Shown here: positions 15,674-59,642 of the stretch, piece by piece
Layout of the letters: each line of letters begins with the position of its first letter
How positions within the stretch are numbered: position 1 is the stretch's first letter
Source: Kudoa neothunni
Taxonomy: Eukaryota; Animalia; Cnidaria
Direction: 5' to 3'
NCBI GenBank assembly: GCA_964304625.1
Contig: OZ199840.1
Span: forward strand, 10,755,024-10,819,023
DNA length: 64,000 bases
Notes under the pieces: model-generated
What the model was told of the DNA's origin: nothing
What the model saw: the letters and a program-made list of their open reading frames with translations, nothing else
Database searches by the model: none
Program-made: the position numbers and the translations under genes

Positions 15674-15709
15674 TCCAATACCCCCGAAGATTAACCACGA
15701 GGGAGTTTA

Positions 15710-20514: not shown

Positions 20515-23407
20515 ATGAAGCTATTATCTCACATTTTAGGAATATCATTAGTTATTTTTTGTAATTACACACATAATTCCAACACTTGCTTAATAAATTT
20601 TAGCAAAATTTTTTTTATTAAATGGGGATGCTCCAGCACAATCTGCTCCTGCCCCTGTCCCTGAATCTACTCAAAAAGCTCTCAGCTACACTATCCTTAA
20701 AGAAAGCGATGGAAATAAGGTTAAAATTACTTTAAGTGGCAGTGATTATACTTCTCCAAAATGTTATATGAAAAAATCTGAAGAAAATTCCGAAAATTAT
20801 GCGGAAATAAATGGATGCCCTGGAAATGATAGTGGAGCCTCTGGAAAATGTTTTAGAACCTGTTCCGGAGAAGACAATAAACTGACCTTCACTCAATTTT
20901 CCCCAAGGACCAAGTATGTAGCAGTTTTTACAGGGAGTGAAGCTGCAACTACCACTGGAAAATCTACAGGTGGAACAGTTTTTGGGCTCGAATTGCGTAT
21001 ATAATTATATATGTATTTATATAAAATAATATTAGGTTTATTGGTGAATCCGCAAGTAACAATAACAACTACAACTGCAACTTCAAATCCAAGAAAACTG
21101 AAATTAAGCACTGTCACATGCAAACAAGTTGCATGCCCCATATTTTACAAGGGAGTAAAATACGCAGATGGAACTGCTACAAATGATAGTACTAATGAGG
21201 TGGATTTTGATATGATGATACCTCATTACGAAATGAGATGTGAGAATTATCCAAGTTTTTTTTATAAACTGCAAAACAAATATACGTTGAAGGAAATGGA
21301 TGTTTATCAACCCCAATATTATGTTAAATTTAAAGACATTGATAAAACTAAATATCAAATAAAGTTTACTAATAAATTCCCCTTCGAAATATGTCGTTTC
21401 AGTATTAAGGAAGAGTCTACTGAAGTTAATGCGACTTCATCCAATGAATACACTTCAAATTGCGGCGGAACAGGGAAAGATTGTTATGCTCCTTGTAATG
21501 ACGTAGAATTAACATTCTCTGACACAAAAGTTCTGGTTGAAGTTATGATTCAAACAAGACATTTTCCTTTAGGAAAAGTTGATACAAATTACGTTGGATA
21601 CATACAAAAGAAATTTGGTAATAGATCATTATTTTTATTTTTAAATACTTGATATTAGTCATTACTAAGTCCCCCACCGCTGATGGGACGTTATTGTCCA
21701 CTTTCAAAAAAGATGGTGTCACTTTAAACGTTCCTTTATTTAATCCAACAGACAATCCTAAATTTGGAAGTTGCACGGTGACGCATTATGCAGCAGACAA
21801 ACCGGCTCCTACTAGCGGTGAAAGAACAAATTGTGTAAATTCTGGAAGTTCTGGTAGTACTCAATGCGGAGATACATGTACATCGGCTTTGACGATAACA
21901 GGATTATCTCCCGGAAAACCATATATATTTCTTATAGCAGCCGGAGTATCTGATGGAATAAAGGAAGGTTTTAAGGAAAAAATATTCTTTAGAACAGGTA
22001 TATAATTTTAATATTTAATTTATTGTAAAGTATGCTAAGAAAAAGAAGATTCAAAAACATTTCCTCCAGTAACACCAACGTTAAGTGAGACAGCGGCCTC
22101 AATCAAAGCCATATCTGGAGATGACACATTGACAAAAGATGACGCTACATGCGCCTATTATATTAGTCCACGCGGGAAGGATGTTTATGTTTGTGCAATG
22201 TGCATTGATAGTTATCCATGCCGAGGTTTATGCAGGGAAACTCAGACTATTGTTGGATTGAAGCCAGGAAGTGAGTATGACCTTAAGGTTGTTGCACATA
22301 AAGATTATGGGTTCAAAGTACATCCAATTACAACAAGTATATTAACTAAGATAAATTGAATGAGTTGATTTATAGCAAAATCAACATTCACATTAACAAA
22401 GGAATTTGTCGACAAGGGTTTCAAAATAGTAGGCACATTGTCTACACCTGATGCAGAGGCTAAATGCCACTACAACGTGGAAGTTAAGAAGGGAAATCAG
22501 TATACTTTAATTCACCAATGCCCCCAAGCACCAATTTCTCCAAAACCAGCTGAAACCCCTTCCAATAAATCAAAGCTTTCCAAAATTATGGTCGCTAGAT
22601 CAGCAACTGATTCGACTTCCCCTCAATCGAGAAAAACGACCTCAAATATGCCCACCTATTGCACTGAGCCTCCATCATGTTCTGAGATATTATTCACAAC
22701 TAATTATGATCGCTCTAAGAAATATCGTGTGGTGGTAACTAAGGCAGGAGCACACGACGCAAATATTGAAATTCCGGAAAGTAAAATTTTTGCTTTTATT
22801 AAAAAATTAAAATTTGTATTATAATATAATTATTATAATTAGATCCTATTGTAAAAAACCAAGATATAACTAAACAAATTATTATTAGCATTGAGCGTGA
22901 TGGAAACAAATTAAAGGTTACGTCGGCACTACCACAGCAATTCGCTGAGAACACATGTGGATGGGAATTAAGAGACTCAACCAATCCTGAGAACATTTTA
23001 GTTAAATCATGTAATGGAGAAAACGATGGAGGTTGTGAAACCCTTCCTAAATGCAAAGAATTTGAAATCACAAATGTTGAGGATACAAACGATTACCATT
23101 TGACAGTTTATGTTAGCAGTGATAAAACAATCAATGGAAATAGCCAAATTAAGAAAGGTATATGTGTTATATGCTTAAATTATCAAATTCTTCTTAGGAG
23201 AAAGTTACGACACAATGAAATCAACGTAATTTAGTTGTATTTATTTTTGTCTTTTATAACACTTATTTAGATCAAAAAACACTATGTAAATATATAATAT
23301 ATGTATTTGTAAATATTTAATGATTTAGAATAATAATAGTCGCAGCCGCTGTAGGTGTGGTTATTCTAGCTGCCGTTGCTGTGGTTTTCATAAAGAAAAG
23401 GAATTAA
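20515..23407 (+). CDS. Surface protein copy A: Cys-rich FN3-like type I membrane protein, 10 exons, 832 aa
   Basis: Introns 20561-20603, 20997-21035, 21618-21658, 21998-22039, 22337-22375, 22781-22842, 23158-23197, 23226-23270 and 23286-23328 give an in-frame 2499 nt CDS. Signal peptide MKLLSHILGISLVIFSKFFLLNG; FN3-like motifs FSPRTKY, GLSPGKPY, GLKPGSEYDLKVVA; TM and tail IIIIVAAAVGVVILAAVAVVFIKKRN*. Confidence 0.9.
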
Positions 23408-23749
23408 CCAGCGATTTATTATTTAATTACAGATTTTATTTATCAATTAATATAATATTTTAATAAATCATTTAATTTATATTTTCGTTTCTATAGCAAT
23501 TCTCTCTAAATTTTCAGTTAGCTCACTTAAAATATAGAAATTTTGTACCCATTTGAATAAGTTATAAAATAAAAAATAAAAAATCGTGTTTATCTCACTT
23601 AGATGCTTATATAATCCTAATAAATTATTTTATACAACAATATAATTTTAGTTGATTTATATTTAACTTAATTAGCTATGTATGATAATTGCAGAATTGT
23701 ATAATTAATTTTTACTCTCCAATGCGTAGAAATTTGAAAAAACCAATAT

Positions 23750-26900: not shown

Positions 26901-29804
26901 CTTAAGTTAACTAAAACATAAATTTGTAAAAATTAAAAAATTTTATAGAAAAAAATGTAGTCACATGTTTTTAAATTCAGATTTGAAATATCTGAAGTAA
27001 GAAAAAAGATATTCATCGTCTTAAGAATCGACGGCCCCAGAAGGGATTATACGGTCTCGTTAGAATAGCCAGTGCCTTATTTAATTTAATATTCCATATT
27101 AGACAGAAAAAACAACTCTTATACAATAATTTCTAACAGATAAAATTCTTTTTTAGCATATATAATTTGTATGGGGGAAAATTAGGAATAGTTTATATTC
27201 TATTGAAATATTATTTATTTAGAGTATTCTGTAATATGAATACATATAGCAGGCAAAATGCATTGTTTTGATAATCCATCTACTATCTATATACAGTCAA
27301 GATTTTGTATTGCGTAATTTTTGGGACCGATAAAAAATTATTCAATATCGGGTCATATTGATTTTTACGTTACGCATTATTAAGTCAGGGGAACATAGAA
27401 AAAATATTTTTTAATTCTTTTTAAACGGAATAATTTATTAAACGAAATAAGGATAATGATTCAAAATTTAATTCCAATGCAATTATTTTCAACATGAAAA
27501 TTTTAAATTACTTATTAATGAATTACGATATATCCAATATCGACTATTTTTTAAATATTTAGGATGATACTTAGGCGCTGAGTATCTGTGTTGTTATAAG
27601 GGGGCATTATAGTTTATATCCGATAAAATAGTATTTTGAGCCAATGAATGTTCTTTTCTGAAGTTATGATATAGATAAATAAATTTCGCAATTTTTAAGA
27701 TTCCACAAAATTATCTTACTTTTAATTTCATAATCTCGATTGTTAAAGTATAATACTTAAAAAAAATTTTAAACTTTATCCTGACTATGGATTAAGTGAA
27801 AGTATTAGTGTATTTTTCAAACAAAAATATTTCTACTAAGAAATGAAACTGGGAATTTTGCTCCAATGCTTTTATATTTTTCTAATATAGAATGGTTATT
27901 CCATAGAAAAATGTTAGATCATGTTTTTTATGCGAGTGGAGTTAGCGATTTTCTTGTGACAGCATGATCATTGTCATGCAAAGAATTTAAGATAGAATAT
28001 ATTTTTATTTTTCCATGAGAGAACTTTTTGGTTACTTATTCGCCATAATTATCAAAAATAAATAATCAGTGCTGACATAATTGATGCCATTAAGAGTCTG
28101 AAAGTATCCCGAATAAAATTATCCTTATGAAAATTACAGATGATGATTGTCGACTATGCAATCATTCCACCTCTTGGCAAATCATGTAATGCCTATTACA
28201 ACTTAGGAACCGAACTCAGACTTTACCAGTTGGCTGAAACTAAAAATTCTAAAGCAGTTAGATGAACTCACGAAATTTCTCCATAGGTGGTGTGTCGATA
28301 AAGTTACAACCCAAGTGGTTTAGGCAACCGTTGATTTTTAATATTGCGATGAATTGAAATAATAATAATAATAAATACCTTGATGAGAATTTTAGACTTA
28401 AATAAATTGCCGTGTAAGAATGAATTTCAAAAAGACAACGCTACCAACGTTTTGGTGTCACCAAGTCAAATGATACCCCCATATTTCTCAAAAAGCTATG
28501 TAGGTATATACCATTTGTTCAACTTACCTATACAAATAATCTTTTTCAAGATTAATCAATAACGAATGTACGGTACTAAACTAACTTCATGTGAAGACGA
28601 TATGCGAGTGGCACCTTCTAAGACGACCCCGCATATTTCGGTGTTAGTTTTGAAAGAAAGCAACAGAAACCTCATTGATATTAAATACTCTTCGATTTTG
28701 TGCTAGAATTTTTTTATTTATGTCTTTTAATCTTTCGTCTGTTCAATAAGTTTTGTTCATTATTTTAAATAATTAAAATAATTATCTTATGAATTTAAAT
28801 TCACAGACATATTTCACAATCGCACAGCTCCATGCATTTGATAATGTTAAGAATCACTGGAATCGACTTGCATTTTTAAGTTAAATTACATATGTATAAT
28901 TAATACAATTTTAAGATAATAAATTTATATAAATAATTATCAGAAGATCAAAAGATAATAATAGTTGATATTATTACTATTTTTTCCTGGTTATAAAATT
29001 CAAATTGATGGAATGCGTAATGAAACTTTTTAGATAAATCATGAATAGAAGGTTTTAAATGCACAGGTTTTATGAATGGTGAGTTTATTTCGTACTCTCA
29101 AAATATTATGATAATAATTCTCACTCAAATTTTAGGAAAAATGAAGAATTGTAATATTTTTGAGGTACAACATACTTTACTGTTGTGATTACTTATGATA
29201 AAATCACGCAGAAAAAGGCTCTTTTTTGTTATTTTATAAACATAGAGTGAAAAATTAATTTTTCGCATTATTTTACTTTCGATCTTTATATAAAAATAAA
29301 AAAATATAATTATATTGAAGATAATAACAATGCAGTTTTCCCAACATAAAATTATTTTTAGGTAATTCAATTTAATTTGAATATCATTTTAGTTATAAAT
29401 TATACTTATTTTCTTAACATGGAAAAATAGATACATAATTTAGTTCTGATTAAAATAAGGGTTTATTGATTAAAATATTAATGAATCAATTAGGGATTTT
29501 ATGTTATGCTTAAATTCATTAGTATTAATACATTCATTCATTACATCATATTTAATCAATGAACGGTTAACATGAAGTATTGTTATTGTTTTTATGCTAT
29601 AATCATATCATACTAAATTAATATAATAAATTCATAATTTTCATAGGTTACTTAAATAAAAATTATATCGTTTATATTATATTCAACTTTAATTTAACTA
29701 GTAAATATTATAATGTTTGTTATATAATAGACTTCAATATAATTGAATAACCCTATTTGAACAAATGTAACGACAACTTCCGTGAGTAAATTAGACTCAA
29801 TACA

Positions 29805-32692
29805 ATGAAGCTACCATCTCATATTTTGGGAATATCGTTAGTTATTATTTGAAATTACACACATAATTCCAACAATTGCTTAATAAATTTTAGCAAATTT
29901 TTTTTTATTAAATGGGGATGCTCCGGCGCAACCTGTTCCCTCACCTTCTCAAAAAACTCTCAGCTACGCTATCGTCAAAGAAGGTGATGTTAAAAAGGTC
30001 AAAATTACTTTAAGTGGTAGTGACTATACTTCTACAAAATGTTATATCAAGAAGTCTGTTGAAAATTCTGAAAACTATACCGATATAAATGAATGCCCTG
30101 GAAATTCTGTAAGTGGAGCCTCTGGAAAATGTTTTAGAACCTGTTCCGGAGAAGACAATAAATTGACCTTTGATAAATTTTCACCTAGGACTAAGTACGT
30201 AGCAGTTTTTACAGGGAGTGACGCTGCAACTACCACTGGAAAATCTACAGGTGGAACAGTTTTTGGGCTCGAATTGCGTATATAATTATACTCGTATTTA
30301 TATAACATAAAATCAGGTTTATTGGTGAATCCGCAAGTAACAATAACAACTACAGCTGTGACTACAACTCCAAGAAAACTGAAATTAAGCACTGTCACAT
30401 GCAAACAAGTTGCGTGTCCTATATTTTACAATGGAGTACAATACGCAGATGGAACTGTTGGAACTAGTTGCACTGAAGCTAATCAGAATCATGAAGTAGA
30501 ATTCAATTTGATGATACCTCATTATGAAATGAGATGTGAGCATTACCCCAGTTTTTTTTATAAACTACAAAACATATATACGTTGAAGGAAATAGACGTT
30601 TATCAACCTCAATATTTTGTTAAATTTAAAGAAACTGATAAAACTAAATACTTAATAAAGTTTACTAATAAGTTTCCCTTTGAAATATGCCGTTTTAGCA
30701 TTAAAGAAGTTACTACTGCTGGAGCTGGTGCGACTACATCCCAACAATATACTTCAAAATGCGGCGGAACAACGCAAGATTGCTATGCTCCTTGTAATGA
30801 CGTGGAATTAACGTTCGTCGACTCAAAAGTTCTGGTTGAAGTTATGATTCAAACAAGACACTTTCCTTTAGAAAAAGTTGATGAAAAATACCTTGGCTAT
30901 ATACAAGAGAAATTTGGTAATAGATAATTATTCGTTTTTGAATGATCTCTGTTAGTCGTGACTGAGACCTCCACTACTGGGGGACAACTGTTGTCCACTA
31001 TCACCAAAAATGGTGTCACATTAAACGTACCTTTATTTAATCCAACCACAACCCCGAAATTTACCAGCTGTACAGTTACTCATTATGCAGCAGACGAACC
31101 GGCTCCTACAAGCGGTGCAGTAACAAATTGTGAAATTTCTGGTTCCAACTGTGGCGATAATTGTGCATCAGCTCTAACGATAACAGGATTATCTGCCGGA
31201 AAGCCATATATACTTCTTATTGCAGCTGCTGTTACTAATGGAATAAAGGAAGGTTTTAAGGAGAAAATATTATTTAGAACAGGTATATAATTTTAATATT
31301 TAATTTATTGTAAAGTATGCTAAGAAAAAGAAGATTCAAAAACATTTCCTCCAGTAACACCAACGTTAAGTGAAACAACGGCCTCAATCAAAGTCATACC
31401 TGGAGACGGAGCATTGATAAAAACTGACGTTACATGCGCTTATTATATTAGTCCACGCGGAAAGGATGTGTATGTTTGTGCAATGTGCATCGATAGCTAC
31501 CCATGTCGAGGCATATGCAAGGAAACTCAGACTATTGTTGGATTGAAGCCAGGAAGTGAGTATGACCTTAAGGTTGTTGCACATAAAGATTATGGGTTCA
31601 AAGTACATCCAATTACAACAAGTATATTAACTAAGATAAATTGAATGAGTTGATTTATAGCAAAATCAACATTCACATTAACAAAGGAATTTGTCGACAA
31701 GGGTTTCAAAATAGTAGGCACATTGTCTACACCTGATGCAGAGGCTAAATGCCACTACAACGTGGAAGTTAAGAAGGGAAATCAGTATACTTTAATTCAC
31801 CAATGCCCCCAAGCACCAATTTCTCCAAAACCAGCTGAAACCCCTTCCAATAAATCAAAGCTTTCCAAAATTATGGTCGCTAGATCAGCAACTGATTCGA
31901 CTTCCCCTCAATCGAGAAAAACGACCTCAAATATGCCCACCTATTGCACTGAGCCTCCATCATGTTCTGAGATATTATTCACAACTAATTATGATCGCTC
32001 TAAGAAATATCGTGTGGTGGTAACTAAGGCAGGAGCACACGACGCAAATATTGAAATTCCGGAAAGTAAAATTTTTGCTTTTATTAAAAAATTAAAATTT
32101 GTATTATAATATAATTATTATAATTAGATCCTATTGTAAAAAACCAAGATATAACTAAACAAATTATTATTAGCATTGAGCGTGATGGAAACAAATTAAA
32201 GGTTACGTCGGCACTACCACAGCAATTCGCTGAGAACACATGTGGATGGGAATTAAGAGACTCAACCAATCCTGAGAAGGTTTTAGTCAAATCATGTAAT
32301 GGAGAAAACGATGGAGGTTGTGAAACCCTTCCTAAATGCAAAGAATTTGAAATCACAAATGTTGAGGATACAAACGATTACCATTTGACAGTTTATGTTA
32401 GCAGTGATAAAACAATCAATGGAAATAGCCAAATTAAGAAAGGTATATGTGTTATATGCTTAAATTATCAAATTCTTCTTAGGAGAAAGTTACGACACAA
32501 TGAAATCAACGTAATTTAGTTGTATTTATTTTTGTCTTTTATAACACTTATTTAGATCAAAAAACACTATGTAAATATATAATATATGTATTTGTAAATA
32601 TTTAATGATTTAGAATAATAATAGTCGCAGTCGCTGTAGGTGTGGTTGTTCTAGCGGCGGTCGCTGTGGTTTTCATAAAGAAAAGGAATTAA
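29805..32692 (+). CDS. Surface protein copy B; exons open but first intron donor is GA (possibly silent)
   Basis: Same 10-exon layout as A. Intron 1 starts gaaattac at 29851, where A and D have gtaattac. Ends ...VAVVFIKKRN*. Confidence 0.8.
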
Positions 32693-36957: not shown

Positions 36958-37251
36958 GCTCGAGGGCAACTCGAACCCAATTCCTATTTTAATGCCCACG
37001 GCCTGTCACCCACTGTAATAAGAATTATCTTACTTAAGTTTTTTATAATAAATTTTTACGATATAACCATGCTTAAGATATTAATATTTTGAGCTGGAAA
37101 TTTGTTAATATAATTTGACCAGATTTCAAATTAATAAAAATTTAATTAGAATTAGAGACAAAAACAAGGAATTCGGGGTCAATATAAAAAGGAGACAAAT
37201 CTTATGAAATCGCATTATTTTATCTTTAAAGCCACATGCAAAAATTGAAAA

Positions 37252-39852
37252 GGTAATGAGGGAGTATCCATCTCCAAAAATTCATTCTTTTGCGCTTGTA
37301 AAAACCTACCGATTTTATTATAAATTGTCTTTATACATTTTTAAATATGTAGTAATCACAAATATCTTTAAAAATATCAGTTTAAAAAAATCAATAAAAA
37401 TGCAGCTTTGGTCATTATCGTAACGTGCGCACAACTTTGTGCGTCCTTTTTTGCGCTTTATTTCCCTAAGTTTCCATATATATGCAACTTTGAGACCATT
37501 AATATGTTCAATTTAATTAAATTTTATAATATCATTAGTATTATCAATAGATCTCTACTTTAGTTCTACATTTTGGGTATTAGATATAATTTTTGTGATT
37601 TTAATTATTGGTTTAAAAATTTTTATCAGAGATAAATTAATGAGTTATATTTAAAAGTTTCTGAAACAAGCTATCGACTGAAGCTTAGTAATGGTAGAAT
37701 TTAAGTCGCAGCACCAGTTTTACAAGCTGCTTCTAGATCAAGGAACATTGCTAAACTCCTTACCCAGGAACGGTCTATTGCAGAGAATGCCGAACAGGTG
37801 CAAGAATTGTCGTGGGTATAAAACCTATAAATTAAAGATTGAACGAAGGTTAAAAACAATTCCACAGATCTACAATTTATTTGTGAATCAGAAAAATCCA
37901 CTTATATTTGTTCAAAGTAATTTTATGTTACAGGAATTATTCTAGATATACTTGTAAGACATGTCTCTCTCTAAGAACCTCAACTCTCTTTGGAATTATG
38001 AATAAATTTCAAGACAATTCTTCAAAGTTATCGGTTTCCTATATTTTTGAGCTGGTTTATTTGTGGGCTATGGATGAGCTTAGACACCAGATGATCATTT
38101 TAACTGGAATAACAGGAAAAACTATTACATATTGGTACTCATCCTTAAGAAAAATTTGTTGGGAAAATTTTCAGCGGCGTGACAAGTTCGACGGAAAAAG
38201 AATTATTGAAATAGACGAATGACTTTTGGGGGAAACGGAAAAATAATCGTGGTAGGTACTTGGGAGCAGATGACTGGAGAAGCGCCCCTAATGAAACGTA
38301 TTCTCCATCATCATCATGATCTGATGATGACACGGATGATGATGCTGGTGGCACTAATGTCGAAAGATATAGGAAAGGAATAGAAGGTCCATGGGTAGTT
38401 GGAATTTATGAATGTTCCGTTGACGGTGAAGGTAATCGTAAATTTCTGGAGTAGATATTTTTTATTGTGGATCGAAGGGATAAATGTACCCTTATACCCC
38501 TAATTTTTCAAGAGGTATCACATGGCTCCACAATTTACACAGACGAATGGAAAGGGTACAAATGGTTAAGAATTTACGGATATAACCATATAGCTATAAA
38601 CTACTCAGAAGAATACGTTACAGATTACGGGGATCATACAAACACTGTAGAGGTTGTATGGCACCATTTAAAAACGAAGCTTTTGCGAAGGATGAGTGGT
38701 GTGCCGAAAGATATGCTTCAATTGTATCTGGCTGAGGAGTTATCACGATCGAAAAATGAAAATTCATGGGGGTTTTCGATTTTATTAGGAAAGAGATAAC
38801 AAGAATATATTCCATTAACAATAATAATAATGAAAATTAGTTTATTCAATTCTGTTGTACGATTCTTCTTCGATTTACGGACACACATTTAGTATCTTTT
38901 ATATAACAACAATTTAAACTTTGTTATATTGTATCATTAAGTTACGTACATTTAAAAATTATGGAGAATATAGTTTTCACTACGGAAATTTATTACCAAT
39001 ATTTTAAAAGTTAATCATTTGATCGATAGAACATAAGCTCTACCAAACGAATACACTAATGCGTTAAAAAACGATATATATTTTTGTATGCCGATAATTT
39101 TTTTTTATTCCATATAATATAAGTTGTTAACAAATTTATGACAACCATTGATTACTTTTTGGTTGTCTTGGGTGACGAAATAATAAAACTAAACAAAATG
39201 CTTCATTTTTAATATGTTTGCGTTCGTGTAGAGTCCAAAACTAGAGATCATTAAGTAACCTTCTCATTCAAAACGAATTCCTTTAATTATTAATGTTTCC
39301 ATTATACAGTAATTTATTAAATAATTTGTGAGTTTCTAATTCACTACAAATATGGGAAATATTATGATAGACACAATAATATTACAATTATTCGCAACGT
39401 TAAAAAAATAAATCACTAAGACAATTATATAAGCTAAAGTTAGTTGGTTTCGACATTTCTAATCAATTAAACTTTTATTTTTTAACGATTCTTTCTGGGT
39501 AGAAGTTAATTTAAATTCAAACAAATTATCTAAATCTATTACTGCTGAGTCAATTATGTTTTTCACCCATAAATGCTATAATATGACTAATTTGGAGATA
39601 ATGATAGCCGCAAAGTTGCATACATGTGGAAACTTAGGGAAATATAGCGCGAAAAAAAACGTACAAAGTTATGATCACGCTATAATAATGACCGAAACTG
39701 CATTTTTATTGATTTTTTTAAACAGATATTTTTAAAGATACTTGTAATCACTTTACATTTAAAAAATGTATAAAGAAGATTTATAATAAACTCGGTAGGT
39801 TTGCACAAGCGCAAAAAGGCGAATTTTTGGAGGTGGATACTCCCCCATTACC
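37252..39852 (+). mobile_element. Merlin (IS1595/ISXO2-like) transposon with ~245 bp TIRs, decayed
   Basis: Long imperfect TIRs starting ggtaatg.gggagtatcca.ctccaaaaattc; 8 bp TSD attgaaaa / attaaaaa. Peptides IIEIDE, GPWVVGIYE, TLIPLI...GSTIYTDEWKGY...HTNTVE..W. Confidence 0.92.
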
Positions 39853-39964
39853 ATTAAAAATAACAATAATTTCAGCTAACAACTTCCAATACCAAACAAT
39901 GCTACGTGATCAAATAATCTTATTAATAAATATTACCTATAAAATATAGTTAACAAAAATTAAT

Positions 39965-42960
39965 TTAATCTTTTTTCTTCTTCAATACTACGATTCCACC
40001 TATCGTTACGACCACAACCACAGCAACGCATGCAATAATGATTCTATAAAAAGGTTAGTTCATATATCAATATTTAAAGATGTTTACATAAGTTTAGTTT
40101 TATCCCTAAAAAACATTAAATAAAATTAAATAAAATCACTTTACTAAACTCACCCTGAGCTACTTTTAGCTCCTACGATATATAACATTAAATCACACTG
40201 TGAACAAATAATATACCTTGTTGTATGTCCGCACCACCGAAAATATTGTTATCTTGAGCACTGTAAACAGTCAAATAATAGTTATTCCAATCAGGTAAAT
40301 TATTTATTTTGAACTCTTTACAGGTTTCAAAGGCAGTGCATCTGTCTACATTTTTTCCCATGCAAGATTTTACTACCGCATTAGACTTGACACTACTGTT
40401 ACGTAACTCCCATTTGCATTTTGATTTATCGTTCATGCCGGCTGGGAGTGTGGTGGTTACAATGAAACTGTTCCCATCACGTGTAATGACGACTGATATC
40501 AATTTTGAGGAGTCAGTTGGGTTTACTTGTGGTGCACCTAATATAAGTTTCGTTTAAAAAATTCATAATAGAGACACTAATTGTAATACTTGATTCTATG
40601 ATATGCTCTTTTTGTGAAGATTTTCCGATAGCTGTGACTAAAATTTTGTATGTATTGGCTGCTTCATACTCGGGAAATGTTATGGAACTGCAAAGGGGAT
40701 TTGAAGAACATGTGTTAGTGCTTTTCGCGGCACCAGCACGTTGTGTATTTGAATTATCTGAAACTGACGATTTCGCCTTTGGCATTAGACCACCGTCTGC
40801 TACCATTGGTGTAGCAATTCTAGCTATACTGAGGTCTTTAGAACTTAATCTGGAAACAGGAACTGAAACGGGTGTTGGTGATACTGGGGCGGTAACAGGT
40901 GGCGTTACTTTCGGCACCACTGGACATGTGTAATAGTCTGTGTAATCGTTGCCAGTCTTCTTTTGTATGATATAACTGCATGTTGCACTTGGATCCACGG
41001 AATTTAATTGTGCCTTCAATGCCAAACCATCCAAGGTGATCTTGTGTGTTATCATTAAAGTTGTTAATGCTATTAAAAAATCATAGAATAAATTAAAACT
41101 TCAATAACCTGTTCGTATTTCTTTGTAATCTTTTATATCGTAGTCCATATGTGCGATCACTCTGATGTCATAAAGAGCGTTTGGTTCAAGGTCTTCTAGA
41201 GTAACTTGATCCCTGCAAATTCCTCTACACGGAGTGTTGCCATTACATTTCGCGGGATAAAAGCTATCTAATCCAGCTGGACTCATCAAATACTCACAGG
41301 TAGGTTCATTTTGTCTATTTTCGGGTGAATTTCCACCAACAGCTGTAAGAGAAACTGTCGTATCTGTCTTTGTAGGATCAGTAGTTTCATATGCTTTATC
41401 TCCCTTTTCTGTATAATTCATTATTTTATAAAATTATTATAATGATTTACTTGTTCTTATGAATATATTTTCTTTATAAATCGTTGAAACATCATCTCCT
41501 TCTAATGTGATCTCAATCATATAAGCTTTTCCCTCTGGAAGTTTCTCTATTGTCAATTTAGAGCAATTGGTGCTACATTTATCGTCGTCTGAACTAGCAG
41601 TGGAACATTTTGTTTCTTCTAGAGTGTCTGGTTTGATTTTGTCCGCAAAATAGTGTTTAAGAGTACATTTATCAATTTTCGGGTTATCAGTGCTTTTAAA
41701 TAGGGCACTATCAATTGACACTCCCTGGTGCGTGTACTCTGACAGGAATCCTTCAGTTGATCCAGTAATTGCTAAAGGAAATAAGAAAAAATTAACATTA
41801 ATATACGGATTACTGATTTTAGTTCGTTCGCAATCTCCGAAATTACCACTAGTAGGATTTATGTCGTGGTGCCTTGTTTGGATTAAAATTTTGTAAATCT
41901 TTTTACCCACAATGCCATTGAGTTCGACGTACTTACAAGGGGCGTAACAGCTCTTGTCGGCTTTACCACAAATTGATGTATATTTTAGATTGTTTGTAGT
42001 ATCCTGACCATCTTTTAGACTGAACAAGCATATTTCAGATGATAGCGAGTTAGTGAATTTAATTCCTACTTTGTCCCCAGTTTTGGCAACAATATAAAAC
42101 TGAGGCTTATAAATGTCTATGCTTTTCTTCATGTATTCATTAGGCATATTGTAAAAGAAACTAGGATAATTTTCGCATCTTACTTCATAATACGATAACA
42201 ATAAATCAAAATCAACAATGTTCAATGTATTATCACTAATACAATCGCCCCCCTTGGTACCATCTGCATATTTAATATCCTTATAATAAATAGGACAATT
42301 TACACGTTCACATGTTTTTGCTGCCAATTTCAGCTTATTTTTGCTGGCTGTTTCTGCAGAAAGAGACACGGTAATTTGTGGATTAACCAATAATGCTAAA
42401 TTCAATTTATTTTATTATTAGATAAAATGGATTTACGTATTGAATATCCGAATACTTTTGCTTCTGCCCCCTGAGTGATGTCTTTAATAGTATTTGTGTT
42501 CTCGCCTACGTAGACGAATATGTATTTTGTTCTTGGCGACAACTTTTTGTAATCAATAGTATTCGTATTAATGTCACAATCGACAACACATTTATCGGCA
42601 GCTTCACCATCGGTATTAGCAGTGCAGCTGTCGATGTTCATAAATGCAGCTGCTGGTGGTGCAGCCGAAGTACCAAGAGTGGACGCAATTTCTGCCTCGT
42701 TAGATCTCCTTAAAAGGCACTTTTTTCCATTTGGATATTCAGAGCCTCCAAGATTGATTTTAATTTTGTCTGAGCTATTAACTGTATCTTTCACAATCTG
42801 ATATGTCAGTGTTTTTGTTGTAGCCGGAGCCGCAGCAGGAGAACTTGGACTTGCAACAGCATTGGCTGAGCTTGATAATAAAATACCTATACTTACATCA
42901 GTATTAAAATTAACTCAGGAAGATACCTAAAACAAGGTAAAGAAATCCAGTTATTTTCAT
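39965..42960 (-). CDS. Surface protein copy C (divergent paralog), 10 exons
   Basis: Signal peptide MKITGFLYLVLGILLSSSANA. Shares LSPRTKY, LLVNPQIT, CPIYY...YADGT, YEVRCENYPSFFY, CYAPC, IQTRH and LEPNALYDIRVIAH with A. Microexons at 40154-40172 and 40088-40105; TM and tail IIIIACVAVVVVVTIGGIVVLKKKKD*. Confidence 0.9.
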
Positions 42961-43246
42961 GATTTTCAATTAAATGAGCTACCAATTGATGGTTCGGAAT
43001 ACAATTGACCCGAATTTCACTTATTTATGGATACAACGATTCATTCATTATCAGGTATAAAAACTTTGACTATATAATAATTATTCAAACTATTAACAAA
43101 TTATTTTAAACCAATTTTTTGTTATCTACCTCAAATCGGTGTGGTAAATTATTTAGAACTTTTAATGGAATCATAAGTTTTCCTACATTACATTGTTTTT
43201 AGAGTAATATCGAAGTAAAATATTAAGCTTTAGAAAAATAATGGTA

Positions 43247-47198: not shown

Positions 47199-50088
47199 AT
47201 GAAGCTATTATCTCATATTTTGGGAATATCTTTAGTTATTATTTGTAATTACACAACTAATTATAATGATTTCTTAATCAAATTTAGCTAAATGCGTTTT
47301 ACTAAATGGAGAAGGTCCAGCAGCTGTTCCTGAATCTACTCAAAAAGCTCTAAGCTACACTATTGTCAAAGAAACCAATGGAAATAAAGTTAAACTTACT
47401 TTAAGTGGCAATGATTACTCTTCTTCAACAAAATGTTATATTAAAAAATCTGAGGAAAATGCCGAAAATTACGCAGATATAAGTGGATGTCCTGAAAACG
47501 CACATACTGGAGCCTCTGGAAAATGCTGTAGAACCTGTTTAGAAGGTGAAAATAAACTGACCTTTGATCAATTTTCACCAAGGACCAAGTATGTAGCAGT
47601 TTTTACTGGAACTGATGTTGGAACTGCCGTTGGGAAAACTACAGGTGGAACAGTTTTTGGGCTCGAATTGCGTATATAATTATATTTTTATTTATATAAC
47701 ATAAAATCAGGTTTATTGGTGAATCCACAAGTAACAATAACAACTACAGCTGTAACCACAAGAAAACTGAAACTAAGCACTGTTACATGCAAAAAAGTTG
47801 CGTGTCCTATATTTTACAAGGGAGTACAATACGCGGCAGGAACAATGGGAAGTAGTTGTACTGCTGCAAACGGTAGTGATAATGAGGTGGATTTTAATAT
47901 GATGATACCTCATTACGAAATGAGATGTGAACATTATCCCAGTTTTTTTTATAAACTGCAAAACAAATATACTTTGATGAATATGGATGTTTATAAACCC
48001 CAATATTACGTTAAATTTAAAGACATTGATAAAACTAAATATCAAATAAAGTTTACTAATAAATTCCCCTTCGAAATATGTCGTTTCAGTATTAAACTAG
48101 AGTCTACTGAAGTTAGTGCCGCTACATCCAAAGAATATACCTCAAATTGCGGCGGAACAACGAATGATTGCTATGCTCCATGTAATGACGTAGAATTAAC
48201 GTTTGATGCCTCCAAAGTTCTGGTGGAAGTTATGATTCAAACAAGACATTTTCCTTTAGGAAAAGTTAATAACAAATACCTCGGTTATATACAAGAGAAA
48301 TTTGGTAATAAATCATTATTTTTATTTTTAAATAATTGATATTAGTCGTGACTAAACCCTCCACTGCTGACGGAACGTTATTGTCTGCTTTCAAAAAAGA
48401 TGGTGTCACTTTAAACGTCCCCTTATTTAATCCAACCACAGCCCCGAAATTTACCAGCTGTACAGTGACACATTATGCAGCAGACGAACCGACTCCTACT
48501 AGTGGTGTAACAACAAATTGTGGAAGTTCTGGCAGTGGCAACTGTCAAAATGCATGTGACGCACCTTTACCGATAACAGGATTATCTCCCGGAAAACCAT
48601 ATATACTTCTTATTGCAGCCGGGGCATCTGATGGAATAAAAGCTGGTTTTAAGGAGAAAATATTCTTTAGAACAGGTATATAATTTTAACATTTAATTTA
48701 TCGTAAAATTCCTTAAGAAAATGACGAAACAAAAACATTTTCATCAGCGAAACCAACGTTAAGTGAGACAGCGGCCTCAATCAAAGCCATATCTGGAGAT
48801 GACACATTGACAAAAGATGACGCTACATGCGCCTATTATATTAGTCCACGCGGAAAGGATGTGTATGTTTGTGCAATGTGCATCGATAGTTATCCATGTC
48901 GAGGTTTATGCAGGGAAACTCAGAATATTGTTGGATTGAAGCCAGGAATTGAGTATGACCTTAAGGTTGTTGCACATAAAGAGTATGGGTTCAAGGTACA
49001 TCCAATTACAACAGGTATATTAACTAAGATAAATTGAATGAGTTGATTTATAGCAAAATCAACATTCACACTAACAAAGGAATTTGTCGACAAGGGTTTC
49101 AAAATAGTAGGAACATTGTCTACACCTGATTCAGAGGCCAAATGCCACTACAATGTGGAAGTTAAGAAGGGAAATCAATATACTTTAATTCACCAATGCC
49201 CACAAGTACCAATTTCTCCAAAACCAGCTGAAACCCCTTCCAATAAATCAAAGCTTTCCAAAATTATGGTCGCTAGATCAAAAGTTGATTCAACATCCCC
49301 TCAACCCAGCAAAACGACCTCAAATATGCCCACCTATTGCACTGAGCCTCCATCATGTTCTGAGATATTATTCACAACTAACTATGATCGCTCTAAGAAA
49401 TATCGTGTGGTGGTAACTAAGGTAGGAGCACACGACGCAAATATTGAAATTCCAGAGAGTACAATTTTTGCTTTTAATGATAAAATAAAACTGTTATTGT
49501 AATATAATTATTATACTTAGATCCTATAGTAAAAAACCAAGATATAACTAAACAAATTATTATTAGCATTGAGCGTGATGGAAACAAATTAAAGGTTACG
49601 TCTTCACTACCACAGCAGTTCGCTGAGAACACATGTGGATGGGAATTAAGAGACTCAACCAATTCTGAGAACGCTTTAGTTAAATCATGTAATGGAGAAA
49701 ACGATGGAGGTTGCGAAACCCTTCCTAAATGCAAAGCATTTGAAATCACAGGTGTCGAGGACACAAACGATTACCAACTAACAGTTTATGTTAGCAGTGA
49801 TAAAACAATCAATGGAAATAGCCAAATTAAGAAAGGTATATGTGTTATATGCTTAAATTATCAAATTCTTCTTAGGAGAAAGTTACGACACAATGAAATC
49901 AACGTAACTTAGTTTTATTTATTTTTGTCGTTTACAATACTTATTTAGATCAAAAAATACTATGTAAAATTAATATTGTTTATGTGTTTATAAATATTTA
50001 ATGATTTAGAATAATAATAGTCGCAGCCGCTGTAGGTGTGGTTGTTCTAGCGGCGGTCGCTGTGGTTTTCATAAAGAAAAGGAATTAA
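47199..50088 (+). CDS. Surface protein copy D, 10 exons, apparently intact
   Basis: Same exon layout as A with canonical GT-AG introns; MKLLSHILGISLVIISKCVLLNG...VAVVFIKKRN*. Confidence 0.9.
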
Positions 50089-53457: not shown

Positions 53458-53465
53458 CTCTAAAG

Positions 53466-55277
53466 CTATTGGAGGTTCCTTCGCACAAGATTCTCCTAAA
53501 GGTAGGCACTCTAATTATATTGCTAAGAAATTTTGATTCACTAAAGTTGCGTAACGGCACTCGATTGGTGGTAAAGTCGTTAATGTCATCTTATTGAGGA
53601 CATTATCGTAATAGGTTGTACCAAAGTAAAAGATTTCTATATTTCGAGAATTCCGATTATTCTTTCAGACACCTCCATTAATTTTAGAAGACTGCAATTG
53701 CCCATCAAACCATGCTTTGCAGCGTCCATAAATAAGGTCTAAGAGCAAATCATCGAAGTTGCCAGTTTATATTTGGAGGAACCGTGTTTTTCTCATGGGC
53801 AGTTGTATGTCGTCAACTCCAGGGCAGGCTCCAAACATAATTTATACGGGTTTTCTCCAAACGGTCTGACTAAAAATATAGTTTATAGGGAGATATTTCG
53901 ATAACTGACTATGCTATCATTTTCTTATTTTTATAGATCTTATTCGCCTACTTGAATTCAGTGTTTATGTAAATTTCATTCAAATTTATTTATATGAAAT
54001 AATGTCTATTTGATTCTATTTTTGGAAATATATCTACAATGACATGTGGAACATTATTCTATTTTCATTAAGTGATAAGAGTATAGACCTTACACGAAAC
54101 ACTTTTATTTGCCAATTTTTTGAGTGAAGAACCGATAACAATCTTCATCCCCGACATTTATTTTAAGATTTAGCAGTAGGTTATGCGATATATGTGCTTC
54201 GTTTACTGTTTGAAGTAATTTTTGTTAATTTCACAAAATAAAAATCTAATACTTCATGCCGCTGATCTAACTTTATGGGGGTTATTGATCGTAACTTGGA
54301 GTGTTATATCAACCTCTATTTTCTTTTTAAAAACGTCGTCAATATCTATCACTGTAATAGGATCAGAAGTTGTTTGGATTCCCAAAAAAAGCTTAAAATG
54401 GTAGATATAGCTATTTTTCCTGTTAAATATATCCTAGGTGTTGGAAAAATACGTACCTGTTCCAAAAACGTGTTGCTGATTAGTGCGAAACTTGCATACG
54501 CAAATTTTCCATAAAATAAATTTTGTAAAATGTCGGTTCGTCATCGTCTTAAAGCTACTACGATCTAGTTACATGGTCAATTTGAACCCAAATCATAAAG
54601 TAACCACAAATCATGATTAAATAAACGCGTTAATTTTAAAAGTGGCTTTGTATTGGGTTGTTATATCTTTGAATAAGCTTGTGGAAGTATTTTGAATTTG
54701 TTTGTCTACATTTTTCAAGATTTCGCGTGTGACGAAATTTCATTGGCAGCCGTTTATAAGATTTCATGTTCAAAATTTAATCTACCACATTGCTGTAGGT
54801 ATGATTCAACTGAAAAGGCCTGTAAAGGATTTCAAGTGAGATTTCAATGTCGGATTCTATATCCCTTTACGCGTCGACTCTAGTATAGTTGTATTCCGTT
54901 CTAATGCCTCACGTATACGTCGCTTTCTATAAGCTTTTCTTAGTTTCTTAACACCATGGACGCATCAAATAATGATGTTGAGATTTAAACGAAATGAGAT
55001 TCATTTGTTAGTATTATAATTTTTTAAATTTATATATATTATGTTTTTTCTGTTTCTTCTTAAATATAATAACTACTTACATTATTAAGTAAAATTTTGT
55101 TACATTTCGTTTACGACTGTTTATTTCGCACAGTAGATTTTCGGCAAATGTTTGTGCTATTAATATAATAAAACGTTTATTGTATTAAAAAATATAATAT
55201 AAAACATTTTTATTTCAATTTTTCCCCATGAATTAGATATTTCCAACACCCCGAGTGTAGTCAGGTATTACGGCTAG
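53466..55277 (+). mobile_element. 3' part of a Helitron (Pif1-like helicase remnant and CTAG terminus)
   Basis: 53470-53904 reads PSHKILLKVGTLIILLRN...NGTRLVVK...RRLQLPIKPCFAASINK...FSHGQLYVVNSR...TKNIVYREIF. The segment ends ccccgagtgtagtcaggtattacggCTAG|T (hairpin-like sequence plus CTAG). That the helicase remnant and this terminus belong to one element is inferred. Confidence 0.8.
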
Positions 55278-55830
55278 TTAACGATATAATTATAAAATGT
55301 GTATTAACTAAATAATATTCAGCTAGCAAGGTCTATCCAAATGTAACTCGAATTATTTTCATTAATGAAACGCATACAACTCTATTAAATATCATCTTTT
55401 AAATGAATATATCAAATTAATAACATAAAACAATGACAAATATTCCTCTAAATTTTACTTGGAATCAATATTTAAAAAATATAATTAAAAATTATAATAA
55501 TTTCAAATCATATTGTTATGTTGGCGTAAAACTTGCTTTTATTATTACTTTTGACCGAACGATTAAATTGATATTCACTCGATATTACACTGGGATTAAA
55601 TTTATCACAATAAAAATATTAAAAATTGTTTGTATAAGTGTCGATTTTTATTGAGAACTTTATAATAAGGAGATTAATTATTGTCTTAAAAAATCAGAAA
55701 ATTAGAATTATAAAAATTACTGTATATTTAATGTTTTTATTCACATCAGTCAGTAAAATTGATTTTATTTAATCGATTTCTAATTTTGACATAAAAATTA
55801 AAAAAATTTTTAAAATATAATTACAGTAAT

Positions 55831-56387
55831 GGATCGGTCGTACGTAATCCCTTTGAGGATGAGGAAATTGTACGTGCTATTGGTCCCGGCCGGATAGTAC
55901 TTTTTTGCTCAAGCGCACAAAATTTTGAACACACAAAACAAGCTGTAACTTAAATATTAATGAAAAGACAATTGTTTTTTTTATTTAAAATTACGATTTA
56001 ATAATGAATAAACATCTGGAATAGAATCAGTCATAAACTCCCATTTTTTGAGCTATGATGTTTAATATAGTTGCCAAACCCTTCTAAATAAAATAACGCC
56101 AACTCTGAAAGGCTCGATTTTTGATCAATAAAATAATCATCCTTTTCTGAATTATTGGGGAGGGACTGTCATTGCGCCATTGTTATTTCTTTGAATTAGA
56201 CAGGACATCATTGTAAACCATACTACTATGTATCTACAACATATGTCAATGATTGATCTTCATTTTTCAACTAGATACCATATTTATGTAACTATAAAAA
56301 CTTTATAATTGTTTAATCGTGGTAAAAATGAAGGAAAACGCTTATTTTAATCACGCGGCAAAAAGAAAAGGTATGTACGACCGATCC
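55831..56387. mobile_element. MITE-like element
   Basis: Perfect 13 bp inverted termini ggatcggtcgtac / gtacgaccgatcc; no clear TSD. Confidence 0.5.
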
Positions 56388-57009
56388 TCACATGACTTTT
56401 TATTTTACATATTTTCGTACTAATTATGCTTAAAGTTATTTGAAGCGAGTAATAATAACATTAAATCATTTTCAAAACAATTTTAAATACGAGAGAACCT
56501 TTTAATATCTAAAATAACTAATGTACGTACGTGCGATGCTACGTACAACCTGTCCTTCGCAGTATAATGAAAAATATAAAAAAAAGAATATTTTCGGGAA
56601 TTTCATCTTTTTAATTATTAATTTATTAGCTTGGGAATTATAAATTTTGAATGTCTAAAAACGATAAAATGACTCAAATTATTAAGAATGTATACTTTTA
56701 TACAAGTAATTTAATTAATTCCTACATAAAAAATTATTATAGGGTATTCTTTGTTTAAATCCGGATGAAGGGATTTACTAGGATTATTAACGAAATTAAA
56801 ATTCAAGAGATACATAAAATGAACTTCGTGAAAAAATATAATTTTTAAGATATGTTTATTCTAAAAGAATAAAATATTTAATTTATACAAAAATTCTAGA
56901 CATTGATTATTGAAATAAATATAAAGTAATTTTACTGTAATTGTAAATAATAACCATCGTTTTATATGGAGTAATATAACGTTTTCTCTAGTAGATGGAA
57001 ATGAGATGT

Positions 57010-59642
57010 TTAGTTCTTGGATTTTCTTGCCATAAAGACCACTCCGCCGATAACCAAGCCCATAGCTCCTATTACCGCGAGGAAACTAAATAAAGATTAT
57101 ATGCAATTTCTTGTTATATTAACATTTTAAAGTTACATCCACCAGTTCTTTTTCATCCAACCACTATAAAAAATAATTTAGATTTAAAAATAAAAAAACT
57201 TATTTTTACCCAGTTCCTTGTCCTAAAAAATATAAATCACAATACATAAATAGTAATTAATAAGTTACTTCCAATTTCAATCTCTTGAATAAGTGCTGCA
57301 GTTTGTCCTTCACCTGACGATAACCGATAACTGTAATTTATATCTATATTGTCCAAGACAACCGAATTGGCACAATCAATGTCATCATCAGTTGATTTTC
57401 CAATCTTCTCAAACAAGAATTTGTCATCTGGATTCGTGGGATTGATTGCGTAAATCACAACGTCACATAAATTCCCTGGCTGAGTCTTGTCTGGTATGAT
57501 TGTTAACCTTTTTTCATCAATGTCAAATGTTATTTCTGGTTTTACTTTATTTTCACTTGGTCCTAAAGTTTGTATTTTAATGTTCATAAATCAATATTTA
57601 TTCACTTATTTGTCGCGACACTTGATAAACTGGATGATTAATGTGACCAGCATGGACCAACTCGATACTTAGGGTTATATTAACAGGTAAATTTATCACA
57701 TAAAATCTTTGAGAACACAAACCCCAACATAGTTTTCCATTCGAACAGGTTGCTATTATTTTTCGCGATTTTCTGGGTATTCTATATCTCACGTAACATT
57801 TCATTTTTGGGAGATAAGACTCATATTGAGTCTCCGTTCTTGGGGTCATAATCATTGTGTCACCAAAAAACAAGGCTTGTGTCCCATCGAATTTAATTGG
57901 AGCTAATAAGATTTAGTATTTATAATAAATATGTATATACTCGTTGCCAGAAGTTTATTAACAACATGCTCTGCAGCACTAGAACTTGATCCTATTTTCA
58001 TCTCAAGTATATATGCTGTGTTAGGAGTTAGAAGTTTCAATGCCGTTTTTCCGGCACACGCATCAGTACATGCTTCGTTTCTACCATCTCCGCATATTTT
58101 GCTCATAGGAATCCCCGGAAGTTTTGCGGGTAACAAGGACGGATAACACTTGTCAGAAGCTTCAGTATCGGTAACTTCATAATTAGCTGATGTTGCTGTG
58201 ATATCAGACAATGTTACAATATTTTTATTGGCTAGATTATATTATATTATTTTATATTTATTTATTAAGAATATACCTTTAATTTTATATTCTTGATGTC
58301 CATGTCTAGTCGTTATTTGGATAGTGTAATCTGTAAGAGCGGATGTACTTTGCCCCGTCAATTCTAGAGTGGTAGCTCCACCACAGTATTTATAGCATTT
58401 TTCATTACCAGTTCCAGTCTGACTACATTTATCCTTATAACTAATATCACCACCCTTTATTTGGAAATTGCAGATTTCATAGTCCATGTATGGATTTTGC
58501 ACTTTTAACGGGAATTTGTCTGATGTACCCGTTTGTGATACGGTGAAAGGAACATATTTAAATTTGTTATCTTTATTATAGAAAGATTTGTTGGCATAGA
58601 ACATGATTTTAGCTTGGGTAGCACCACAGTAAGAGTAGTAGGCATTAGACATTGAGTAGCGAATTGGTACAGTAATATTATATGCAGAACAATTGTTATT
58701 TTCCACCTTGACCAAAGTTGTATCTTGGTTAGTGCTTTTAACTCGGCATTTGTAGTTGTCCGTGCAGAAATTGTTAACACCGAATTGAGCTTCTTCTTCA
58801 CTAAGTGTAACATTAGTTTCAGGAAGTCTTGACATATCTACCAAAAAATAAGCTTAAAAACTAAACTATTTTTATTTACCAGCTGGAACCGCTAATATAT
58901 TAACTTTGATTCCTTCAGTAATTCTGAAATAATGCATCGATCTTCCACTATTAACTTTAATCACAACCTTCTCGTTACATTTAGGTTCGCATATAACTTC
59001 TTCCTCGCCAACAGCTATTCTACACATAATTTCATTGAATTTGGCTCTAACTCCATCTCTAATAAAATGTTCTATTTTGCATTTATCGGCTTCTACTCCA
59101 TTCAAATGAATTGTGATTTCATCCAAGTATTTGGAGATTTCTTGATCAACTATAGGTATATCTTCTGGATTTATTATGGTTTCAATAGGGTCGGCAGTAG
59201 TAGTAGATTCTGTGCTCTCATTTGATGAGGAAGAATCAGTCGAAGATTCGGTATTAGTCTCTGTCTCTGGCTCAGTAACAGTATCAATATCAGTATCAGT
59301 CTCATCATTTTCAATACCATTCTCATTATCGTCTGTAGCGCCAGTAGCATCCGCAGCACCACCATTACCAGTGTCACCAGAAATAACATCTTCACTTTGA
59401 ACCTCTTCAGTGGATTTCATAAGTATCAAGGGAATGCTTGAGGTTGAAGTGTTATCTTGAATAGCATTAATTTGATTATCACCTTCTGGCTGTGGAGCTA
59501 CAGGTACAGGTCGTTCGATTTGTTTGATAAAATACTTATGACAACATACTAAATATGAATAAAATATTTAAAGGAAGATAAAAAGTAATAGTTTACTCGT
59601 CGTAAGAATAGTTGAAAATAAAAACCAAAATGGCAACCTCAT
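57010..59642 (-). CDS. Surface protein copy E (most divergent; N-terminal acidic Ser/Thr-rich region), 9 exons
   Basis: Signal peptide MRLPFWFLFSTILTTICC. Family motifs EICNFQIK, CYKYC, IQITTRH, LTPNTAYILE and LCWGLC...LVHAGH. Microexons at 57210-57222 and 57137-57163; TM and tail WWIFLAVIGAMGLVIGGVVFMARKSKN*. Confidence 0.85.

Follow-up and report, generated by a model that had tools for sequence, protein, structure and literature searches.

A large lineage-specific family of predicted FN3-rod membrane proteins in the myxozoan Kudoa neothunni: a candidate surface coat or adhesin repertoire

A 64,000-nucleotide stretch of the genome of the myxozoan Kudoa neothunni, a parasite of tuna muscle (GenBank assembly GCA_964304625.1, contig OZ199840.1, positions 10,755,024 to 10,819,023 of the forward strand; hereafter the window, to whose numbering all positions refer unless a contig is named) carries five genes, A to E, between positions 20515 and 59642, which raise the question of whether an animal parasite possesses a repertoire of variable surface proteins and, if so, of what kind. 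A preliminary description, made from the DNA alone, had read these genes as a five-member cluster of an unrecognised, Cys-rich family with fibronectin type III (FN3)-like modules, designed like the variant-specific surface proteins (VSPs) of Giardia and involved in host interaction or immune evasion in a reduced animal parasite, which the source organism indeed is. We find that the five genes are a small sample of a superfamily with ~190 or more members on the arms of all three chromosomes. With a probability of roughly 0.6, we read A-E as representatives of an undescribed, lineage-specific superfamily of K. neothunni FN3-rod membrane proteins which would serve as a surface coat or adhesin repertoire at a host or inter-stage interface.

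Gene models of A-E were built from coordinates with profile guidance, and translation and dN/dS analyses (ratio of nonsynonymous to synonymous divergence, omega) used the coordinate-joined exons; database searches and structure predictions were run exon by exon. The five genes are real: all five gene ends given in the preliminary description were reproduced exactly, and the models are complete with 0 internal stops. Their products are complete type I membrane proteins of 748-875 aa, and all five genes follow a common multi-exon plan, consisting of a signal exon, 5-6 phase-1 ectodomain exons, a micro-exon of 13-28 nt and a transmembrane (TM) exon. Introns are 38-62 nt long and GT..AG, except for the donor of B intron 1, and those which bound ectodomain exons are all in phase 1, as had been described; the last intron of each gene is longer (103-124 nt), in phase 2, and follows the micro-exon, which was absent from the earlier exon list. 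This micro-exon is kept at 28 nt in A, B and D and has equivalents of 19 nt in C and 13 nt in E. The GC content of the gene-bearing windows was of coding type when compared with published exon GC. The genes and their exons are as follows.

20515-23407, + strand: gene A, 9 exons, 827 aa, seven predicted beta-sandwich modules, intron phases 1,1,1,1,1,1,1,2
20515-20560, + strand: A exon 1, start codon and signal peptide, 46 nt, starting MKLLSHILGISLVIF and ending at a phase-1 GTAATT donor
20604-20996, + strand: A exon 2, distal module D1 with 4 Cys, domain hidden Markov model (HMM) match 1e-41
21036-21617, + strand: A exon 3, double module D2-D3 with the YPSFFY motif, containing the hypervariable D2 loop
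21659-21997, + strand: A exon 4, fast-evolving module D4 with 4 Cys and an L.I.GLSPGKPY motif, Pfam fn3 sub-threshold at E=0.12
22040-22336, + strand: A exon 5, module D5 with 5 Cys, Pfam fn3 / FN3_DSCAM sub-threshold at E 0.001-0.01, domain HMM 1e-42
22376-22780, + strand: A exon 6, module D6 with a Pro/Ser-rich insert, 100% identical to B in protein and DNA
22843-23157, + strand: A exon 7, membrane-proximal module D7
23198-23225, + strand: A exon 8, stalk micro-exon of 28 nt that enters in phase 1, leaves in phase 2 and keeps the frame into the TM exon
23329-23407, + strand: A exon 9, TM helix, KKRN tail and stop, translating to IIIVAAAVGVVILAAVAVVFIKKRN
29805-32692, + strand: gene B, 9 exons, 826 aa, close paralog of A
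29805-29850, 29894-30277, 30317-30916, 30956-31282, 31325-31621, 31661-32065, 32128-32442, 32483-32510 and 32614-32692, + strand: exons of B
39965-42960, - strand: gene C, 8 exons, 875 aa, of a different subfamily, with D2-D3 and D4 fused in one 945-nt exon
42927-42960, 42437-42886, 41451-42395, 41109-41408, 40590-41069, 40217-40537, 40154-40172 and 39965-40043, - strand: exons of C
47199-50088, + strand: gene D, 9 exons, 825 aa, close paralog of A and B
47199-47244, 47288-47671, 47711-48304, 48346-48675, 48718-49014, 49054-49458, 49521-49835, 49876-49903 and 50010-50088, + strand: exons of D
57010-59642, - strand: gene E, 8 exons (five of them for the ectodomain), 748 aa, N-terminal region acidic and rich in Thr/Ser
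59597-59642, 58880-59548, 58277-58837, 57941-58231, 57606-57902, 57269-57562, 57210-57222 and 57010-57085, - strand: exons of E

The exceptional donor in B (29851-29852, + strand) reads GA instead of GT, at the place where A and D both have GTAATT, and an unspliced intron 1 would lead into an in-frame TGA; this may reflect either a very recent inactivation of B or a base error in a low-coverage assembly.

In each of the five proteins an N-terminal hydrophobic signal and one C-terminal TM helix were confirmed. The cytoplasmic tail is basic and short as described, with an actual length of 4-6 aa rather than 4-5 (KKRN, KKKKD or ARKSKN), and is not conserved between subfamilies; given a tail of this size, the protein is unable to signal by itself. 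The signal peptide and TM architecture suggest a location at the cell surface, where the protein would be glycosylated and would probably function at a host interface. The cysteine scaffold reported ahead of an L.P...Y motif holds, taking the form C-x(17-31)-C-x(6-11)-C-x(3-5)-C followed by an L.P/G..Y-type motif in the FN3-like modules, with ~4 Cys per module. The term Cys-rich does not, as cysteine makes up 3.2-3.8% of A-E and each protein has 0-2 CXXC motifs.

In a six-frame open reading frame comparison A, B and D were 69-100% identical to each other in amino acid sequence per exon and C was 25-46% identical to these three, while E had no match to the other four genes at E below 1e-5. E matches a 24-sequence D2-D3 profile along almost the whole of its length (HMM E=2.6e-7), and it has ~15 closer paralogs elsewhere in the genome, which form a separate clade, and E is therefore a distant superfamily member. 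The claim of five paralogs thus stands for the close trio A, B and D and the divergent C, and has to be loosened for E.

Likewise, the five-member cluster is an apt description of a local array and not of the extent of the family. The assembly searched comprises 40.26 Mb in contigs of 17.15, 12.04 and 11.05 Mb and one of 18.2 kb. A search with the D7 exon yielded 304 candidates and one with the D2-D3 exon 471, of which at least 150 in each case were scored as matches, on all three chromosomes; a back-translated YPSFFY pattern matched the genome 196 times and its reversed control 6 times. Of the 44 motif matches on chromosome 1, 18 fell within its final 0.85 Mb, and the interval from 3.3 to 11.2 Mb had only 2. 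To gauge copy state, 40 motif loci were sampled from the genome, and the family was present at 39 of them; ~28 had no frame break, ~6 had one or two frameshifts and 5 were clearly degraded. The one or two frameshifts in these ~6 loci may stem from errors of assembly, given HiFi coverage of roughly 7x. Twenty-two genes (gene C of the window and 21 of the sampled loci) passed a strict filter that demanded at least 85% coverage of each of six exon modules within one open frame. A sixth family gene starts just past the end of the window (contig 3, 10820394-10820783), and its D7 exon is 93% identical to that of A, so the A/B/D subfamily array continues.

A family of this size might also be without function, as a collection of repeats or pseudogenes, as cargo of transposons, or as an artefact such as uncollapsed haplotypes in a low-coverage meta-assembly, and there are observations which lend themselves to that reading: the coverage just mentioned, the 45.6% of the genome classed as "repeats" (PMC12239612), the GA donor in B, at least one frameshift in 11 of the 39 sampled loci, remnants of MULE and ISXO2-like transposases between the genes and an 800-bp inverted repeat around E. 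We nevertheless consider it very improbable and already disfavoured. A, B and D are tandem copies on a single scaffold, separated by different genes and diverged by ~14% in nucleotide sequence, which refutes their being uncollapsed haplotypes; splice sites and phases are kept between genes only 25-45% identical, the majority of the sampled copies have open frames, omega values fall well short of 1, and collinear genes occur in related species. Haplotigs and transposon cargo were rejected as readings of A-E.

The proposal that the modules are FN3-like is borne out at the level of the fold, while the sequence match to Pfam fn3 stays sub-threshold. The AlphaFold2 (AF2) model of D2-D3, with a predicted local distance difference test score (pLDDT) of 74, consists of two tandem beta-sandwiches, and the structures that it matches are receptors with FN3 domains in tandem (Foldseek E about 3e-4, VIA Z 6-7.5). 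The pair superposes on the IL-7R, gp130 and leptin-receptor tandems, and single FN3 domains superpose on its residues 85-193 (D3) with a root-mean-square deviation of 2.7-3.2 Å and Z of 6-6.7 over ~80 residues. For the D7 model of A (AF2 pLDDT 85), the best Foldseek matches were FN3 domains, namely tencon, contactin, titin and integrin-beta4, with TM-scores of 0.5-0.65. Taken together, these middling scores suggest that D2-D3 and D7 adopt an FN3/Ig-like beta-sandwich fold. Modules are regarded as homologous to each other because they share a cysteine and motif pattern; the profile-profile comparison of D7 with D2-D4 gave a weak match (E=0.04). Two receptor-based identities were rejected. A transferred host cytokine receptor was set aside for lack of sequence similarity and because introns and composition are of parasite type, and a class I cytokine receptor homology module because the WSxWS motif is found in 0 of the 5 proteins and the tails have 4-6 residues.

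Searches for relatives returned very little. A Pfam scan of the nine exon translations gave only sub-threshold fn3 hints in D4 and D5, with the remaining modules scoring nothing against fn3; it gave no VSP match, and no s48/45 or SAG match even at E up to 1. A PDB sequence profile search found nothing even at E up to 10, and a D2-D3 HMMER profile run against 1.84 billion protein representatives retrieved 17 short fragments and 0 annotated proteins. A word-indexed protein search with the 314-aa exon of C returned one European Nucleotide Archive (ENA) fragment, a Joint Genome Institute (JGI) metagenome scan no relative, and feature-based and shape-based queries of the ESM Atlas only generic clusters of FN3 or dockerin-type beta-sandwiches. 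The Kudoa literature that we searched holds no description of this surface-protein family, and the genome paper, which predicted 5,316 proteins from protein hints, names no gene family, surface protein or orphan class (PMC12239612). As there is no Pfam, PDB or annotated-protein match and no Kudoa paper on it, we regard the family as undescribed, and the suggestion of an undescribed host-interaction family is supported. The database fragments belong to AT-rich contigs of other samples. These share no more than 74% identity with the K. neothunni genome and carry collinear D1-D5 genes in the same module order at 21-50% identity; related species therefore carry the family too.

The preliminary description had also placed substitutions and indels in the loops between cysteines. 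In a 24-member alignment, positions outside predicted strands are indeed more variable than those inside (entropy of 1.48 vs 0.97 bits, p=3e-4), and in the D2 loop A lacks 5-6 residues, including one Cys, which are present in 22-23 of the other 23 members. A gradient of divergence along the genes extends to synonymous sites and is therefore not due to selection on loops alone. Within a 5.4-kb alignment that averages 86% identity, A and B share perfect runs of 758, 287, 225 and 197 nt, distributed as follows.

22236-23290, + strand: A/B conversion tract of about 1 kb, identical to B 31521-32575 apart from a 10-nt stretch
19254-19478 and 23456-23652, + strand: shorter perfect A/B tracts within the same alignment

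The 225-nt match lies ~1 kb upstream of both A (19254-19478) and B (28524-28748), with flanks 63-90% identical, and represents a conversion tract of its own or else a conserved element upstream of the genes. Between A and B, synonymous divergence (dS) is 0.31-0.58 in exons 2-4 and falls to 0-0.016 in exons 6-7, with omega of 0.2-0.65. The gradient from 5' to 3' is thus equally strong at synonymous sites, which argues for gene conversion.

The same pattern recurs among the 22 intact genes used for module comparison. Mean identity is highest in D2-D3 (0.54) and lowest in D1 (0.38) and D4 (0.41), whereas within subfamilies D7 is 0.85-0.97 identical and D4 0.47-0.67, even between chromosomes. In the same gene pairs, including cross-chromosome pairs, dS is 0.06-0.33 for D7 vs 0.34-1.2 for D2-D3 and D4; for example, the D7 of C is 90-92% identical to that of genes on chromosomes 1 and 2, and the D4 of the same pairs 47-51%. 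Omega is 0.15-0.42 in D2-D3 and D7 and 0.25-0.67 in D1 and D4 (0.33-0.67 for D4 within subfamilies), so that module-wide values lie between 0.15 and 0.67 in nearly every comparison, the exception being one D6 pair at 1.06. Some 15-codon windows reach omega of 1-2.6, on counts of just 2-4 synonymous changes. The evolution of the family is therefore mosaic and under overall purifying selection, and the constant base and variable tip of the proteins arise largely because the 3' half has been converted or ectopically exchanged, in addition to the weaker constraint on D1 and D4.

These data raise the question of whether the locus belongs to a true antigenic-variation system, in which one or few members would be displayed per plasmodium or clone and switched over time to evade fish antibodies, with conversion generating mosaics. 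A large and mostly intact repertoire in chromosome-arm arrays, mosaic conversion tracts, variable distal modules and loops and a tiny cytoplasmic tail all speak in its favour, and a 2026 preprint reports antigenic variation, by a mechanism not known, for Sphaerospora molnari and a small number of further myxozoans (10.64898/2026.02.11.705288). On the other hand, module omega stays below 1 but for the one D6 pair, and the few 15-codon windows above it rest on tiny counts; synonymous sites follow the same gradient of divergence; nothing resembling an expression site was observed; and in muscle the parasite lives inside host cells. We consider this reading quite unlikely. Equally improbable in our estimation is its boldest form, namely that a clonally variant coat of the var/VSG style evolved independently in Metazoa, with Kudoa expressing one or a few of ~200 mosaic FN3-rod genes which are renewed by conversion.

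Conservation of D2-D3 together with variability of the distal module also invites a reading in which the proteins face other cells of the parasite itself, mediating recognition or adhesion either at own-cell contacts, as in cell-in-cell development and sporogenesis, or between co-infecting plasmodia as an Alr-like self/non-self system. Kudoa is a cnidarian, a myxozoan transcriptome paper has speculated on a role of immunoglobulin superfamily (IgSF) proteins in non-self recognition, citing Hydractinia Alr, and the tandem beta-sandwich type I architecture, clustered genes and variable distal module are Alr-like; D2-D3 could then bind a conserved parasite partner. Yet the tail of 4-6 residues is too short for Alr-type signalling motifs, ~200 copies far exceed the needs of structural adhesion, and the likeness to Alr is one of architecture with no sequence link seen, which together make this reading unlikely.

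The reading that we prefer, a surface coat or adhesin repertoire, would account for the data in the following way. The product would be a type I membrane glycoprotein in which the signal peptide is followed by seven beta-sandwich modules (D1 to D7, with D2 and D3 as a pair), most of them FN3-like and each braced by ~4 Cys, forming a rod roughly 25 nm long that continues into a short stalk, one TM helix and a basic tail of 4-6 residues. The repertoire would have grown by tandem duplication in chromosome-arm arrays and would have been reshuffled by gene conversion and ectopic recombination, which would keep the membrane-proximal 3' half, and D7 above all, alike within subfamilies, while D1, D4 and individual loops would drift under relaxed yet still purifying constraint and D2-D3 would stay conserved family-wide. 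The role of such proteins would be that of a coat or of adhesins at the host-parasite or an inter-stage interface. In such a role, the family would most likely resemble the apicomplexan SRS and 6-Cys families more than an antigen switched one at a time.

Several points weigh against that interpretation. Placement at the cell surface comes solely from the signal peptide and TM architecture. The Kudoa stage in fish lies inside muscle fibres, and the relevant interface may therefore be that of another stage or host. The dN/dS values are pairwise Nei-Gojobori counts on recombining paralogs and not the product of a site model. The fold scores are middling, with Z below 8 and Foldseek E of 1e-3 to 1e-4, and the matches to Pfam fn3 (PF00041) are sub-threshold, at 16.5 bits for D5 and 13 bits for D4 against a cut-off of 25. 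Finally, the gene copies are known from DNA alone, the genome paper having very few parasite RNA reads, and the assembly derives from roughly 7x HiFi coverage, such that the GA donor of B and the single frameshifts may be errors (PMC12239612). Among the sequencing runs on record, those that contain the locus are DNA runs with 31-59% of it each, filed under a species label to which huge WGS and RAD-seq runs also belong, so that the label is probably that of a host; no run recorded as RNA contains it.

Myxozoans are economically important parasites of fish, and the family supplies concrete candidates for the parasite surface. At ~200 genes of 2.5 kb each it would amount to roughly 4% of the gene count, and it may partly sit within the 45.6% of the genome labelled as repeats. 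With its description, antigenic variation or host recognition in myxozoans becomes a testable question; the family also offers targets of a diagnostic or vaccine type and an animal example of var-like mosaic evolution, built on an FN3 scaffold.

The surroundings of the locus were also surveyed. The window has a GC content of about 30%, and housekeeping genes lie upstream of the array, with a ribosomal protein S12/S23 family exon at 5646-6074 (+) and a NUDIX hydrolase exon at 15695-16183 (+). At 37249-39855, inverted 280-bp repeats (83% identity) flank open reading frames, with an ISXO2-like (IS1595) DDE transposase fragment at 38455-38796 (Pfam E=1e-15), and this element is a probable DNA transposon abutting the 3' end of C. 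E is bracketed by an inverted repeat of ~800 bp (90% identity, 54474-55280 and 59941-60745), which could represent a pair of transposons or the termini of a larger mobile element with E as its cargo. A 334-aa open frame at 62983-63984 (-) matches a MULE transposase at a score just short of the threshold (E=6e-5), which fits the MULE expansion described in Sphaerospora molnari in a 2026 preprint, alongside VSP-, RIFIN/STEVOR- and ETRAMP-like families (10.64898/2026.02.11.705288).

In the wider genome, the published assembly was recovered from yellowfin tuna HiFi data and comprises 40.2 Mb with an N50 of 12.0 Mb, three chromosomes and a circular mitochondrion, a GC content of 30.4% and a median intron of 49 bp; just one of its chromosome ends carries a (TAAACC)n telomere (PMC12239612). 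We located this repeat in the last 540 bases of contig 2 (12039536-12040069) and at no other chromosome end in the assembly; the end of contig 3, 230 kb from the window, is therefore without an assembled telomere. Over its first 10 kb, the fourth contig (18.2 kb) has 42-45% GC and a strong AT skew and gave no tRNA and no Rfam rRNA match, and it is presumably a highly divergent Kudoa mitochondrial genome. The only three matches to nuclear-receptor zinc fingers (zf-C4) in the genome fall within 10 kb of each other (contig 1, 10296485-10306767), and no Wnt domain was found anywhere in the genome.

Which known systems, then, does the family resemble? The Giardia VSPs, in which cysteine exceeds 10% and CXXC motifs are many, share with it, as do the VSP-like genes of Sphaerospora molnari, a signal peptide, a Cys-containing ectodomain, one TM helix, a tail of ~5 residues and a large repertoire (10.64898/2026.02.11.705288). 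The design nonetheless fails on cysteine content, CXXC density and conservation of the tail, which varies in Kudoa, and the Kudoa ectodomain is a predicted chain of beta-sandwiches with no Pfam VSP match; the likeness put forward in the preliminary description is thus architectural only, and membership of the Giardia VSPs was rejected. FN3 and tandem cytokine-receptor modules are approached in the predicted fold of D3, D7 and D2-D3 and in an L.P..Y-type F-strand motif, although Pfam fn3 reaches just 13-16.5 bits, WSxWS is missing, identity is 5-15%, and the Kudoa modules add a C-x-C-x-C-x3-5-C brace and have no kinase-coupling tail.

The SRS (SAG1-related) and 6-Cys (s48/45) proteins form large parasite-specific families, often in tandem arrays, which serve in attachment and immune modulation; they are membrane-anchored tandem disulfide-braced beta-sandwich modules expressed by stage and not switched singly. 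The Kudoa family is likewise arranged in arrays of mostly intact copies under overall purifying selection. It differs in that no sequence similarity was found, its modules carry four Cys and not six, it ends in a TM helix and short tail on FN3-like modules where the apicomplexan proteins mostly have a glycosylphosphatidylinositol (GPI) anchor, and its bearer is an animal where theirs are protists; membership of either family was rejected, there being no Pfam s48/45 or SAG match. Within Cnidaria, the Alr complex of Hydractinia comprises roughly 40 genes whose products have long cytoplasmic tails with signalling motifs. Compared by architecture, both are cnidarian sets of clustered type I proteins with tandem beta-sandwiches seen by structure prediction only and a variable distal domain, but the Kudoa tails of 4-6 residues leave no room for ITAM/ITIM-type motifs and the genes number ~200. 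The closest functional analogues of the Kudoa family may be the apicomplexan SRS and 6-Cys proteins and, among cnidarians, the Hydractinia Alr complex.

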